A stretch of 64,000 nucleotides of DNA, from NCBI RefSeq assembly GCF_000143415.4, contig NW_003314450.1, positions 32,436-96,435 on the forward strand, read 5' to 3'. Of the stretch, positions 41,069 to 47,031 are shown in pieces. The notes under the pieces are model-generated. The model saw only the letters and a program-made list of their open reading frames with translations, did no database searches and was not told the origin of the DNA. Each line of letters starts with the position of its first letter. Position 1 is the first letter of the stretch. The stretch comes from Selaginella moellendorffii (taxonomy: Eukaryota; Plantae; Lycopodiophyta). The position numbers were made by a program, and so were the translations under genes.

Positions 41069-41140
41069 ATCAGAGTGGCGCAGCGGAAGCGTGGTGGGCC
41101 CATAACCCACAGGTCGGAGGATCGAAACCTCCCTCTGATA
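41069..41140 (+). tRNA. Cytosolic initiator tRNA-Met (CAT)
   Basis: 72 nt, A1:T72, GGG/CCC anticodon stem, A54 T-loop ATCGAAA, upstream CAA, downstream T-runs. Confidence 0.96.
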
Positions 41141-41316
41141 GTGCTTTTATCATTTTTTAAAAACAATCCAAGAAAACTTGCTATTACGATCTTGATTTTA
41201 CGAAGATCCTCTGTGAATCGAAAACAACGAGTAGAAGTTGTGCGTCGAAATTCAATACTGTTTGCCGCAGAATATTCAAAGTCGTCGTAAATTACTATTG
41301 TCTACCGTGTTTGGCC

Positions 41317-41787
41317 ATGGCGGCTTCCCTGGTAGCAGCTCCAAGTGGGCGATATCCATTTGCGATTGGGCGCCTTCCAAATCGTAATGCACGGTTCCAA
41401 CCAGCTCCAGATGTCCGATTTCCATCGCCAGTTCCAATTGGGCGATTCCAGCCAGCTCGATTTCCACCAGGTGGGCGATCGAGGCTTCGCGTCTGGGCGG
41501 CTTACAAGGTAACGCTGGTGACCCCTGAGGGCGAGAAAGTGCTGAGCGTGCCCGAGGATTCCTACATTCTGGATGCCGCGGAGGAGCAGGGCGTGGAGCT
41601 GCCCTACTCGTGCAAATCGGGGGCGTGTTCTTCTTGCGCGGGCATGGTGAAGCTGGGCGAGGTGGATCAGAGGGACCAAACGTTTCTCACTGATCTCCAG
41701 GTGAAACAAGGCTACGTTCTCACCTGTGTGGCATACCCGGTCTCGGATTTGGTCATTCAAACCCACCAGGAAGAGAAACTCTACTAA
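41317..41787 (+). CDS. Plastid 2Fe-2S ferredoxin
   Basis: [53 protein letters not shown]; N-terminal transit peptide. Confidence 0.95.
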
Positions 41788-41941: not shown

Positions 41942-43942
41942 TCATGGCCGATCCATGCTCTTGAGCTCCTCGGACGACAATTCCTCCCCTCCAGTCCCCC
42001 AGTTCCTGACGTCTTCGATCATCTTCACCACATTTCTCATCTTTGGTCGATCCCCTGGCAGCGTCGCCACGCACACCAGCGCAATCTGAAGCATCTCCAC
42101 CATCTCCTCCTCCGAGAACCTCAAGATCCCCTGGTCGAAAACCTCCTCCGTCCACTCCTCCCGGACAACCGACTGGACCCATCGCGGGAGATCCAGCATC
42201 TCGCCCGAGTGATTGCTCCTCCACGGCGCCTTCCCCGTGAGAATCTCCAGCAGCACCACCCCAAACGCGTAGACGTCCGACTGCTGCGTGAGCTTCCTGG
42301 TGGCGGACAGCTCCGGTGCCCGATAGCCCACCGGGCCCAACGCCGACTCGGACCCCGGCCCCAGCATCTGGGCGATGCCATAGTCCGCCACCCGGGCTTC
42401 CATAGAGCGCGAGAGGAGAATGTTGGAGGATTTGATGTCGCCGTGCACTACTTGGCCCCCCAGCGACTCGTGCAAGCAAGCGATCCCTCTCGCGGCGCCA
42501 AGCGCTATCCGGAGGCGCATGGACCAGTCCAGAGATATCGACTGTTGTGTCTCACCACCTTTTGAAGGAAAACTTAGTATACAAAGACGAGGAGAAAGAA
42601 ATCCGGGTTGCTTACCATGAAGCTGCGCCGCTAAGCTTCCCATTGGGATGAACTCCGTCACCACGAGCTTCTCCGTCTTGGAAAAGTAGTAGGCTCTTGG
42701 GACGTGGAGATTTTGATGCTCGATCTCTCCAAACACCGCCATCCTCTTCTCAAACTCTTTGCTTCCCAGCTCAACTCCTTTGATCCTCTTGACCGCCACC
42801 ATTTGCCCGTCCTCCAGCACCGCCCTGTAGCTCGTCCCAAGGCTCCCCTGCCCCATCATCTCCGCCGATGCCCGCAAGAGATCCTCCAGGCTAAAGTTGT
42901 TCTTACTCGTCTTGAGGAAGACCAGTTGCCCGGCTTGAGCCTCGGCGCTCTTGTCCGAGCTCGAGAACTCCCTCGTGAAATCGTCGGAGCTGCTCACCTC
43001 GGCCTTGGGCTTGGGACTCCGGGCCGAGGCTGCCGATATCTCCCGCTTGTGCTGCTTGTGCCAGTAGCACAGCATGAACAGTGTCGTGAGCACTGCCAGG
43101 AAGGCCACATCGCCAATGACGAGCGCAAGAATTGCGCCAAGACTAAGTCGTCTCCCCGGCTTCGTTTGAGTTGGCGCTGCCGGCCTACTTGGAGTTGGCT
43201 CTGGAGATGCCGGGGCGGAGCAAACAAATCCCAGAGGCCTCCCACAAAGATCAAGGTTGCCCGAAAAATCCTGTGGTGGAAGCTGCGCGAGAGTCTGTGG
43301 GATTTGTCCGCTAAGGCTGTTGTTGGCGACGCTGAAATCCACGATGGAGCTGCCGCGCTGGATTGCCGGAATTTTACCTGTGAAGGAGTTGTTCTGGACG
43401 AGAAAAATCTTGATGCGTGGAAGGCCCTCTAGAGACTGCGGCAAGCTTCCGTTGAGGGTGTTGTAGGAGAGATCGACGCGGACCAAGCGAGGCCAGGACT
43501 GGAAATCCCACGTAATCGGGCCCGTGAATCGGTTCCTTTGCAGCACCAAGCTCCGGAGCTTCCTGCATTTGATGAGATCGCCGGGAAGTGGCCCGGAGAG
43601 AAGATTCGACCTCAGACTGAGAACCATGAGCTCGTCCAGGGATCCAAGAACGCCGGCAGGGACAGCTCCGGAGATCCCCACGCCCGGGAGATTGATCTTG
43701 AACACTCTTTCCCGAATTTCACTTACACTGCCGTTGGAAGACCCGATCGTGGCGTTGATGCACGTAATCCCTTGCCAGCTACAAGGATCCCGCTGCGTGC
43801 TCCATCCAAGAAGATTGGAGGGGTCCGTGGCATTGCGAAACGCGACCAACGCGCTCAAATCCTGCTCCAGCATGGCGGCATCCGCGAGAAAAATCCCAGA
43901 TAACACCAGCGCTGCGCACAACAAGCCGCATCGACAATACAT
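41942..43942 (-). CDS. LRR-III receptor-like kinase (RLK902/PRK-like); intron 42559-42615
   Basis: About 5 LRRs, TM helix, FSLEDLLRASAE, DLPRWVQSVVREEWTEEVFD. Confidence 0.92.
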   Translation of the reverse strand: MYCRCGLLCAALVLSGIFLADAAMLEQDLSALVAFRNATDPSNLLGWSTQRDPCSWQGITCINATIGSSNGSVSEIRERVFKINLPGVGISGAVPAGVLGSLDELMVLSLRSNLLSGPLPGDLIKCRKLRSLVLQRNRFTGPITWDFQSWPRLVRVDLSYNTLNGSLPQSLEGLPRIKIFLVQNNSFTGKIPAIQRGSSIVDFSVANNSLSGQIPQTLAQLPPQDFSGNLDLCGRPLGFVCSAPASPEPTPSRPAAPTQTKPGRRLSLGAILALVIGDVAFLAVLTTLFMLCYWHKQHKREISAASARSPKPKAEVSSSDDFTREFSSSDKSAEAQAGQLVFLKTSKNNFSLEDLLRASAEMMGQGSLGTSYRAVLEDGQMVAVKRIKGVELGSKEFEKRMAVFGEIEHQNLHVPRAYYFSKTEKLVVTEFIPMGSLAAQLHGKQPGFLSPRLCILSFPSKGGETQQSISLDWSMRLRIALGAARGIACLHESLGGQVVHGDIKSSNILLSRSMEARVADYGIAQMLGPGSESALGPVGYRAPELSATRKLTQQSDVYAFGVVLLEILTGKAPWRSNHSGEMLDLPRWVQSVVREEWTEEVFDQGILRFSEEEMVEMLQIALVCVATLPGDRPKMRNVVKMIEDVRNWGTGGEELSSEELKSMDRP

Positions 43943-44591
43943 TTCCAAACCCAAGAAACTCCAAGAATCAAGACGCCGCGCCGCCTCTTCTTCCTGCTCT
44001 TGCGATCCTCGCGACGAATATCAGATATTTCCCTGCCGGATCGCTGTCTCATTTGCAAGGGAAGGCGCTTGGAGAGCGATCCAATAGCTTTCTTGGAAGA
44101 ACCCTAAACCTTAGAAAGAGCTAGACCCGCACATAGCCGCGTTGTCGCTTAACTGCTGGAAAGCTGGAGGTCCGCCAAATGTGGAGTAACGTTAAAAGTC
44201 ATCAAAATTTCACTATTACTAACTTTTGGCGGAGCTCCGCTTGTCGCGTAGCTAGGAGAAATCGCAACGGGCCGGCCGGCCACGCGTGACGCGCCTAATT
44301 CAAATTGGCGAATATCCTTACCGTTGACAAGAATATACTACACGATGGCGCGAAAAGATTAACAAGCTTCAGAAGATTATATAAGCTCTAGATTTCTTCT
44401 CTAAGATTATGGGGAATTCCTCTTTAGATTATAGCGACCATCTAGAACTCTTCTCTAGATTATAGTGACCATCGATAGCACCCAACTGGAACTCATCCTT
44501 TCGACCAAACCAGTAGCGCAGGGACGAAGAATTAGTTGCTCTATCCATCCAAAATCCTATAATCCTCCTCTAAAGCGCCCCATTCTCTCTT

Positions 44592-46597
44592 CTACATGAA
44601 GGACATGACGAACGAGTGGAGCGAATTGATGTCCCTGCGCTCTGATGGATACTTGATGAACTTCGTGCTGTTCTTGGGGAAGAAGAGGATCGTCGGGAAC
44701 GTCGTCATCATCAGCTCTTGCTGGCACATCATCTTGTTCACACCATCGGCACGGAACTTGGCAATCTGGAAAAGAAAAATCGATCATGTTCTACTCTGCG
44801 GAAACAACGCGATTTTTACTTACGTAGACTGGTGTGCCTTCGAGCCTCGTGGCGAGTTCCTTGTATGCGGCATCCATGGCCTGAAGAGAAGGGAAAAAGG
44901 ATCAAGAATGTGAGAACATCGAGAAAGAACTTGTAAAGAGAAAACGGGATACCTGGCAATGTGGGCACCAGGGGGCGTACAGGCACACGACGCCGGACTT
45001 TTCACGCGACGTGGTCTTGCCGAGAGCTCGCATTTCTTCACGACTGAATTTGATGATCGACGGATTGTTGTAGAGATCACCGCCGAATTCTTGTTGCCTA
45101 CGGTAAGGCCGGACGTTGTTCATGTTGCCCTGATAGTATGAGAGAACAATGTTCAGCTTTAACTTTCACAGATCAAAGAGAAAGAAGAACTTGCCTTGTT
45201 GATACCCAGCTCCTTGGAGTTGGTTTCCTCCCACCACCACCGTCCCTCTCGCTCGTGCTGCCATGGGAGGATTGATCTCGTGCAAGGCTCACATCCGATC
45301 GAAGCGAACCCCTGCAAAATACATGAAGCAAAATGGAAAAAGAAAGCAAAATCACCTTTGTATGAAGTTCATTGATCGGCACGTTCATGTTCGTGAGAAA
45401 TCTCCAGATCTCATTATGCGACATACTCGCCAGTGGGTTCCATTTCAGCAGAGTTTCTGGACCATCTCGGCCATCAAAAGATGGATCAATCTGAAAAACA
45501 CAACAAGAGAAAATTAGAAACAAAGAGGATTTCGCAGAGCTTCCTTACCTGGACAACAGGCAATTTTCCACGAGAAACTGGGAGTTGGTCCCGACGCTGG
45601 CCAGTGATCCAGGAGCGAAGGCCTTGCAGCTTCTTCGACAAAGGCCTGATCCTGCGAATGTTGCAGCACTCTTCGTGTCCGTCCTGGTAGAAGGAGAACA
45701 TCCCTTTGTCTTTGGTCAACTTCTCAACTTCTCCAGCGTCCGGGAAAACATATTCTATTTGGATGTTGTAATGCCTCTCAACTTCGGTGAAGAACCGGTA
45801 CGTCTCAGGATTCATCCTTCCAGTATCCAGCGTGAACACTCGGTATGGTCGCGCGGATTGATGCGCAATCTCAATGAGCGCGACATCCTCAGCTCCACTG
45901 GTCGAAAAGAGGAAATGCAAATGAGAGACTACTTGCAAAGCAGTCGCAAAAAGACGTACCCAAAAGCGATGGCAATGTCATTGCCATACATTCCCAACGC
46001 ACGATCCATGATCTCCAAGGGAGAACAGGTGTTCATCTCTTCCGCCAGCTTCTCAGGATCAAGCTCGATTTCTCCAGACTCTGAAAGAAAAACAATAAGA
46101 TGAGCTTCTGAGACAGAAGATAACAAACTTACCAGCTGGAGGTGGCTTAGCGGGCTGAAGAGCCTGTTGAGCTGGAGTGAGAATGGGTTTGAGTGGAACT
46201 TGCTCAGGCTCCGCTGCAACTTCAGCACTAGCCACCGCGCAGTAAGCTCTCATTGATAGACCTCCTTGCCTGGGAAGCCATACTCGCGAGCTGGACTTAA
46301 AAGTCGACTGGAGACTCGTTTGTTTGAGACCAGAGCCTGTAAAAACGCACATGAATAACAAAAATCACTTAAAAAAACGCACAAGAAAAAAAAAAGCATC
46401 TCGAGACCACAAACACACAAGAACATCAAGAACAACAAACAACAAAAAGGATAAACCCCAAATTCGCATCTACATTTGCTCTTCTTCCTCCTCTAAAACC
46501 CTCACACTTAAACCCTATACCCTGGCATTCCCTCGAGCATACCTGACGAGACCAAGGGCACGCTGCAGCTCGCGGCGGGCCATGAGACGGCCTCCAT
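44592..46597 (-). CDS. APR: Adenosine 5'-phosphosulfate reductase-like protein (reductase + thioredoxin domain), catalytic Cys substituted
   Basis: [73 protein letters not shown]; in-frame upstream ATG at 46741 is an alternative start. Confidence 0.9.
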
Positions 46598-47031
46598 GGC
46601 GGCGATGCGAGGCGACGGCGGCGGCGGAGTGGCAGCGGCGCCTCGAGCAGGAGGCGATGGAGTGGCGGCACCGCCTACTGCTGCCGCTCGAGCGGCGGAA
46701 CGAAGGGCAGAGGGCGCTAGAGGGATCCTCAACCGCAGCATTATCGCCTAAACCAAACCAAGGAGGAAGAGACAGTAGCGCCGTGGCTTAACCCAATGCC
46801 AATCAAAATGGGAGAAAGCGACTATAGGGTTTTAGGGGTTTTAGCCCGAGATATTATCTAGGGTTCTTACGCTTTTAATCTCGGCCGTCCACCGCCTGGA
46901 TCCACGGCCAGGATCGTCCTCCGGCTTGTGCTGGCCTCTGGCCGCCCGATGAAGATAAGGGCTTTGGAAAATATCTGGCTTTCAAATTTCGAATATTCCT
47001 CGCGGGGGTTTTAGGGCTTTTTAGCGCGGCT

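Follow-up and report, generated by a model that had tools for sequence, protein, structure and literature searches.

Can a gene still be counted among the plant adenosine 5'-phosphosulfate (APS) reductases when the cysteine that carries out the reaction has been replaced? This question is raised by an APS reductase (APR)-like gene of the spikemoss Selaginella moellendorffii, located on the minus strand of a 64,000-nucleotide stretch of contig NW_003314450.1 (positions 32,436 to 96,435; the whole stretch is referred to as the window, and all coordinates are given within it). Flux through plant sulfate assimilation is taken to be controlled at the step of APS reductase, and the cysteine of the enzyme's ECGLH motif is treated as universal. 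The product of the spikemoss gene is named "5'-adenylylsulfate reductase 3, chloroplastic" in RefSeq (XP_002994181.2, 510 amino acids, Selaginella moellendorffii). It is the only recorded iron-sulfur (Fe-S) APR of this model lycophyte; its catalytic cysteine is missing and three further positions of the active site have changed in concert, but the gene is still expressed and maintained by selection. The explanation favored here, and judged reasonably probable, is that the protein is a retained pseudoenzyme or a neofunctionalized redox protein, with its selected function exerted through the Fe-S scaffold and a C-terminal domain bearing the motif CPHC, and with the assimilatory flux carried by APR-B, the cluster-free type of APR.

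The replacement of the cysteine is evident from the translation. Exon 6 contains the motif KELGIN followed by K, and exon 7 continues with GNMNN, giving KELGINKGN where other APS and 3'-phosphoadenosine 5'-phosphosulfate (PAPS) reductases read ECG(L/I)H. The first-pass annotation of this DNA had placed a leucine codon (CTG, 45207-45209) at the position of the ECGLH cysteine, which is borne out both by the translation and by an ungapped alignment to the Pseudomonas aeruginosa structure 2GOY (...WWWEEATHKECGLH), where leucine falls on the catalytic cysteine of KECGLH and asparagine on the histidine. Cysteine and histidine occupy these positions in 258 of 258 fetched non-Selaginella homologues with the RxGRW tail and in 80 of 80 metagenome loci; the leucine-asparagine combination occurs only in four S. 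moellendorffii entries, and all other homologues (338/338) have cysteine and histidine. The same annotation had described the damage as a single cysteine, and this part does not hold: the sulfate-contact lysine has become arginine, the P-loop serine glycine, the QSPGTR loop QLPVSR, and the lid histidine asparagine, with three of the five lid residues altered (ECGLH to ELGIN). In a deep set of 20 plant and 70 bacterial Fe-S APRs, with 83 columns at least 95% conserved, the spikemoss protein is changed at nine (S175G, L203M, V236T, K257R, S280L, T283S, C371L, L373I, and H374N), compared with none in Diphasiastrum or Arabidopsis and one each in Ceratodon, Marchantia, and Adiantum (Fisher P=0.003). 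The lysine and serine replaced by Arg257 and Gly175 are kept in 90 of 90 other sequences.

Numbering from Mycobacterium tuberculosis APSR, transferred via the 2GOY alignment and the published description (PMC8173546), equates S175 with S65, K257 with K145, C371 with C249, and H374 with H252. In the bacterial enzyme S65 contacts the adenine, and K145 contacts the sulfate and is the proposed activator of the cysteine; the C249S mutant forms no thiosulfonate intermediate and is inactive, H252A has lower substrate affinity, and K145A has lower activity (PMC8173546). With leucine in the spikemoss protein in place of the lid cysteine on which the E-Cys-S-SO3 intermediate is built, the canonical reaction should no longer be possible, and the protein is very probably unable to run the canonical thiosulfonate mechanism. 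Other hallmarks of the family are kept. The four Fe-S cysteines (C252, C253, C343, and C346) are retained, in columns at least 95% conserved among the 90 plant and bacterial APRs, as are the sulfate-binding arginines of REGRWWW and the LDTG and TGQR motifs; the CC pair (within HEECC), CEPC, and WCPHC, reported as intact at first pass, are all present in the translation. The protein thus belongs by descent to the APR lineage, yet it is without the catalytic motif of that lineage, and on its sequence a listing among the functional APS reductases is not warranted.

The same appearance could arise as an artefact, through a fault of assembly or sequencing, through wrong splicing in the gene model, or through RNA editing by which the mRNA regains the cysteine. 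Two facts lend this some initial plausibility: C-to-U editing is known to be massive in Selaginella organelles, and intron 6, directly 3' of KELGINK, has an unusual GC donor. However, the leucine is found in two independent haplotype assemblies, in the DNA of a third genotype, and in three RNA runs, and conversion of CTG to TGY needs two changes, neither of them C-to-U on the minus strand. At least half of the sampled words of the gene are present in 20 public runs from 11 studies, and 17 RNA-like runs hold 0.53-0.63 of the sampled words, near the exonic share. Contigs of four runs were compared with the window: X1, X12, and X19 (RNA, three studies) and X2 (DNA). The spliced contigs of X1, X12, and X19 skip exactly all eight inferred introns, of which seven are GT-AG and intron 6 is GC-AG; each of the three RNA runs shows splicing at the GC-AG junction, across which KELGINK/GN stays in frame, and the GC donor is also present in the second haplotype. 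Two checks proposed at first pass, against RNA sequencing and against the other haplotype, both return the leucine: spliced contigs of three runs carry CTG and none carries TGY, and the second assembled haplotype encodes the same ELGIN. Sequencing error, mis-splicing, and RNA editing were rejected because the RNA contigs have no differences from the window at the leucine codon, and an artefact is left with a negligible probability. The gene is intact, correctly spliced, and transcribed in many samples.

The gene model has nine exons on the minus strand at 44592-46741, as obtained from a six-frame reading of 44500-46700 and translation of each exon. Exon 4, as query in a representative search, matches a 510-amino-acid protein (P0001) at 100% identity; the sequence of this protein equals the nine window exons, and it was used for the full-length searches. 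The coding sequence in RefSeq starts at ATG 46741, 48 codons upstream of ATG 46597, which is the start of an older 462-amino-acid model (EFJ04771) and of the first-pass annotation; both starts are on the transcript, because one RNA contig reaches 46758. The 48 extra N-terminal residues from the in-frame upstream ATG (46598-46741) are rich in Ala, Pro, Ser, and Arg. The earlier statement that the reading frame and splice sites are intact stands, with eight introns used and the reading frame open, after correction of the coding start to 46741 and of intron 6 from GT-AG to GC-AG. The features of the gene are as follows.

44592..46741, minus strand: whole coding sequence of the APR-like gene (P0001 100% identical to the exons; spliced contigs)
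46543..46741, minus strand: exon 1 (coding part), presequence rich in Ala, Ser, Arg, and Pro, with the alternative in-frame ATG 46597 (X19 contig 46542-46758)
46133..46336, minus strand: exon 2, presequence and linker (joints 46335/46542 and 46080/46133 in RNA contigs)
45960..46080, minus strand: exon 3, start of the reductase domain, with the new Cys153 at 46025-46027 (RNA contigs, plant alignment)
45549..45897, minus strand: exon 4, PAPS_reduct core, with the CC Fe-S ligands at 45663-45668, Arg257 at 45651-45653, and QLPVSR (Pfam E=5.5e-24)
45356..45490, minus strand: exon 5, PAPS_reduct continued (Pfam E=5.6e-7; RNA joints)
45195..45311, minus strand: exon 6, with CEPC at 45282-45293, REGRWWW at 45231-45251, and the degenerate lid motif ELGIN at 45198-45212 (translation, alignment)
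45207..45209, minus strand: leucine codon CTG at the catalytic cysteine position, residue 371 of 510 (translation, alignment, RNA contigs)
45198..45200, minus strand: asparagine codon AAC at the position of the conserved lid histidine, H252 of M. tuberculosis (alignment; PMC8173546)
45130..45194, minus strand: intron 6, GC-AG, donor AAG/GCAAGT (joint 45128/45194, with 3 ambiguous bases, in X1, X12, and X19)
44953..45129, minus strand: exon 7, interdomain linker and start of the thioredoxin-like domain, with WCPHC at 44956-44970, Cys424 at 44983-44985, and a run of five C (C5) at 44971-44975 (RNA contigs, alignment)
44824..44880, minus strand: exon 8, thioredoxin-like domain (alignment to the Arabidopsis APR1 C-domain, PDB 5YRY)
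44592..44765, minus strand: exon 9, end of the thioredoxin-like domain, with the cis-proline FPT kept, and stop codon (RNA contigs, alignment)

The codon of Gly175, at which all others have the P-loop serine, is split between the last two bases of exon 3 and 45897. Pfam finds PAPS_reduct (PF01507, E=1.4e-43) and Thioredoxin (PF00085, E=1.9e-11) in the full protein; the reductase domain matches the P. aeruginosa APS reductase (PDB 2GOY) with E=1e-81 over residues 125-379, and the thioredoxin-like domain matches the C-domain of Arabidopsis APR1 (5YRY) with E=6e-34. In an AlphaFold2 model built from a 30-sequence alignment, the thioredoxin-like domain is predicted with confidence (pLDDT approximately 90).

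Is such a gene maintained? The second assembled haplotype (XP_002965456.2, on GL377571.1) differs in the protein only by E135Q and I341V, has no stop or frameshift, and has ELGIN codons identical to those of the window. Comparison of the two haplotypes at the DNA level gives 11 exonic differences (9 synonymous and 2 nonsynonymous) and approximately 22 events in 617 intron bases (about 3.6%). With sites tallied per exon and the single change in a split codon counted by hand, pS is 0.0255 and pN is 0.0017, for a pN/pS of 0.067 (binomial P=7e-5 against neutrality). The DNA run X2 represents a third genotype, about 1.5% diverged, whose six private exonic variants are without exception synonymous; among them are CTG to CTA at the leucine codon and changes at codons 370+2 and 367; at the leucine codon itself X2 has CTG or CTA, both of which encode leucine. 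Over all segregating exonic sites there are 15 synonymous changes and 2 conservative nonsynonymous ones (ratio 0.04, P=3e-8), and synonymous divergence is about equal to intron divergence, at 2.5-3.6%. Since all haplotypes encode leucine and the sites run 15:2, the leucine allele is fixed in every haplotype seen (at least three) and strong purifying selection acts on the gene at present. The pN/pS of 0.04-0.07, a constraint measured within the species and only as far back as the coalescence of its present alleles, is not that of a neutral pseudogene. The part of the first-pass reading that saw the gene as retained and not decaying is therefore upheld by spliced transcripts, an open reading frame intact in two haplotypes, this ratio, and the conservation of the Fe-S ligands, REGRWWW, and CxxC.

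Over longer times the two domains have not changed alike. In an alignment of 110 land-plant APRs with 206 columns at least 97% invariant, the spikemoss protein is changed at 41 of the 206, compared with 8 in the lycophyte Diphasiastrum, 10 in the moss Ceratodon, and a median of 1; its branch length is 1.88 substitutions per site versus 0.62 for Diphasiastrum. Selaginella is often found on long branches. The changes in the reductase domain number 34 of 163 near-invariant columns, versus 5 of 164 and 3 of 163 in other non-seed plants (P=3e-7), and those in the thioredoxin-like domain number 7 of 42, versus 3 of 42 and 7 of 43. Because the excess of changes is confined to the reductase domain, the redox domain is seen to evolve at the ordinary plant rate, and the catalytic domain to have been freed from part of its ancestral constraint.

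The redox domain keeps its CxxC and cis-proline. Its CxxC is CPHC (44956-44967), which is unique among 184 two-domain APRs (75 have CPFC, 64 CQFC, 25 CRFC, and 14 CPYC). CPHC is the motif of DsbA, and the CxxC dipeptide tunes redox potential; this is a lead and not a result. Two cysteines have been gained at otherwise invariant positions, A153C and V424C. Position 153 is alanine in 109 of 110 plants and cysteine in the spikemoss, and the position of Val424Cys, six residues before the CxxC, is that of the buried Asp26 in Escherichia coli thioredoxin.

If this protein is inactive on APS, the assimilatory reaction may be carried by APR-B, as had been proposed at first pass. This proposal fits both the published inventory and the paralogue searches, in which no canonical cysteine-bearing S. 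moellendorffii APR is present among the best 120 of about 2000 matches to P0001 and to the Diphasiastrum APR; this suggests that a canonical paralogue is absent. No second APR copy is found by tblastn within the 64-kb window. The top non-self match of both lycophyte queries, ahead of all other seed plants, is a UniRef entry from Tanacetum cinerariifolium (P0151, 602 amino acids), with local identity of 61% and 79% over about half of the query; the entry may be chimeric or a contaminant. By its title, a knock-out paper on Physcomitrella APR reportedly showed that this moss is able to live without Fe-S APR. That Physcomitrella APR knock-out paper is in the reference list of Patron et al. 2008 (PMC2275785), who give the S. 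moellendorffii inventory as "1+1a", that is, one APR and one APR-B, and report that APR-B reduces APS in Physcomitrella patens and Selaginella lepidophylla (PMC2275785). The literature searched contains no paper that names these accessions or the missing cysteine and no description of a dead member of the APS/PAPS reductase family, and the supplement of PMC9426629 has nothing on Selaginella APR.

The explanation proposed is that an ancestral plastid APS reductase, composed of an Fe-S reductase domain and a thioredoxin-like domain acting as a glutaredoxin, would have lost the canonical reaction, a loss presumably made tolerable by APR-B. The reductase domain would survive as an Fe-S-bearing, possibly still nucleotide-binding, scaffold, and the selected activity would reside in, or be read out through, the C-terminal CPHC redox domain. 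The protein might then regulate sulfur flux in response to APS or to redox state, or it might provide glutathione-coupled reductant to APR-B, which is itself without a redox domain. A more specific form of this idea can be offered only tentatively: the dead Fe-S APR may have been recruited as a non-catalytic plastid sulfur partner, either sensing APS or redox state and relaying it through the DsbA-like CPHC, or docking on APR-B and supplying glutathione-coupled reductant in trans.

APS binding, taken at first pass to be intact, is less secure than supposed, since the P-loop serine, the sulfate-contact lysine, the lid histidine, and the QSPGTR loop are also changed. Several observations weigh against a retained pseudoenzyme or neofunctionalized redox protein. 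The loss of activity is deduced from mutants of a bacterial homologue (C249S, K145A, and H252A), the reductase domain is modeled by AlphaFold2 with low confidence (pLDDT 35-70 with the same 30-sequence alignment), and the constraint reported above reaches back no further than the present alleles. A word search with the full protein lists no orthologue from another Selaginella or from Isoetes, and no match above 61% local identity; a 149-amino-acid piece spanning the motif has a best match of 51%, again with no other Selaginella or Isoetes orthologue, and in a metagenome scan the same piece reaches 46% over its full length and up to 61% over shorter segments. In X2, the only contig covering the site is one base short in the C5 run (44971-44975), directly before WCPHC. 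This deletion, which is absent from both assembled haplotypes and from all RNA contigs, may be a homopolymer error or may be genuine; in the latter case that plant would carry a natural knock-out of the redox domain, which would speak for the gene being dispensable.

The same observations could be read as those of a pseudogene in the making, in which catalysis was lost through redundancy with APR-B, transcription and an open frame are residual, and the constraint is a short-term or sampling effect. The possible frameshift allele of X2 at 44971, the lack of orthologues elsewhere among the matches listed for the full protein and the 149-amino-acid piece, the 41 of 206 altered near-invariant plant columns, and a branch about three times that of Diphasiastrum would all fit decay. 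However, neither assembled haplotype has a stop or frameshift and all eight introns are spliced, the excess of synonymous over conservative nonsynonymous changes (15 to 2) is hard to reconcile with neutrality, and the near equality of synonymous and intron divergence and the wholly synonymous private variants of X2 also speak against it, as do a thioredoxin-like domain that changes at the normal plant rate and Fe-S ligands that are all kept. Decay is considered quite improbable. A third reading is that APS reduction has been retained but rewired, with the sulfate attacked by the first cysteine of CPHC, by Cys153 or Cys424, or by glutathione (the "APS sulfotransferase" idea). Strong purifying selection on an expressed gene, the retained REGRWWW arginines, Fe-S ligands, and CxxC, and the two new cysteines at otherwise invariant positions are consistent with such an enzyme, and the unique CPHC dipeptide could reflect adaptation to a new redox task. 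Yet the lysine, the histidine, the P-loop serine, and the QSPGTR loop have changed along with the cysteine, which looks like release of the active site and not fine-tuning, and in the reductase domain the changes at invariant sites exceed those of the plants compared 7- to 11-fold. The M. tuberculosis C249S mutant has neither intermediate nor activity (PMC8173546), and in the canonical mechanism thioredoxin only releases sulfite from the intermediate without attacking APS. A rewired reductase is accordingly rated as unlikely, somewhat less so than decay.

If a pseudoenzyme or neofunctionalized redox protein backed by APR-B is the correct explanation, S. moellendorffii would assimilate sulfate through APR-B alone, and databases and pathway inventories in which the gene is counted as an active APR would be wrong for this species, among them RefSeq with its name "5'-adenylylsulfate reductase 3" and Patron et al. 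2008 with their Table 1. The case would bear on the reasons for the coexistence of two APR types in basal land plants and on what the Fe-S cluster does, and would provide a natural separation-of-function variant, with cluster and redox domain but without catalysis, through which roles of APR other than catalysis could be explored. Should the more tentative recruitment as a partner also be true, the sulfonucleotide reductase family would have its first pseudoenzyme, in a vascular plant that runs all of its sulfate reduction via the cluster-free APR-B.

The neighborhood of the gene in the window includes the following features.

41069-41140: tRNA-Met gene (ARAGORN)
41311-41787, plus strand: intronless 2Fe-2S ferredoxin gene (Fer2 E=2e-20)
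41942-43954, minus strand: leucine-rich repeat (LRR) receptor kinase gene

The order APR, LRR receptor-like kinase, Fer2 is common to both haplotypes, which were compared for protein-coding genes only.

With the plant-type APRs (EC 1.8.4.9), such as Arabidopsis APR1-3 and the Diphasiastrum complanatum APR, the spikemoss protein shares the architecture of PAPS_reduct followed by Thioredoxin and a plastid-type presequence; it is orthologous to them by descent, with the four Fe-S cysteines, REGRWWW, CxxC, and cis-proline in common and an identity of about 57-59% locally and 50-53% globally (all aligned columns). Unlike them, it has ELGIN in place of ECGLH and hence no nucleophile, arginine for the lysine, glycine for the P-loop serine, QLPVSR for QSPGTR, and CPHC where they have CPFC, CQFC, CRFC, or CPYC. 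The bacterial Fe-S APS reductases (P. aeruginosa 2GOY and M. tuberculosis 7LHR) have the same reductase fold and cluster ligands, but they are not fused to a redox domain, and ECG(L/I)H, Lys145, and Ser65 are present in every one of them; the M. tuberculosis enzyme is impaired by C249S, K145A, and H252A (PMC8173546), and the spikemoss protein is naturally substituted at all three positions. APR-B (of the Physcomitrella patens 4BWV type) belongs to the same superfamily and the same plastid pathway, but has no Fe-S cysteines and no thioredoxin-like domain, keeps the catalytic cysteine, and is active on APS (PMC2275785, PMC11350084). All three features that mark membership in APR-B are opposite in the spikemoss protein, which is in this sense the reverse of APR-B, with the cluster ligands and redox domain kept and the nucleophile lost. 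The spikemoss protein also resembles pseudoenzymes such as the pseudokinases, in which a key catalytic residue is lost while the fold, cofactor ligands, expression, and purifying selection are retained: here the catalytic residue is gone from a gene that is intact and expressed, and purifying selection acts within the species across haplotypes that all encode leucine.

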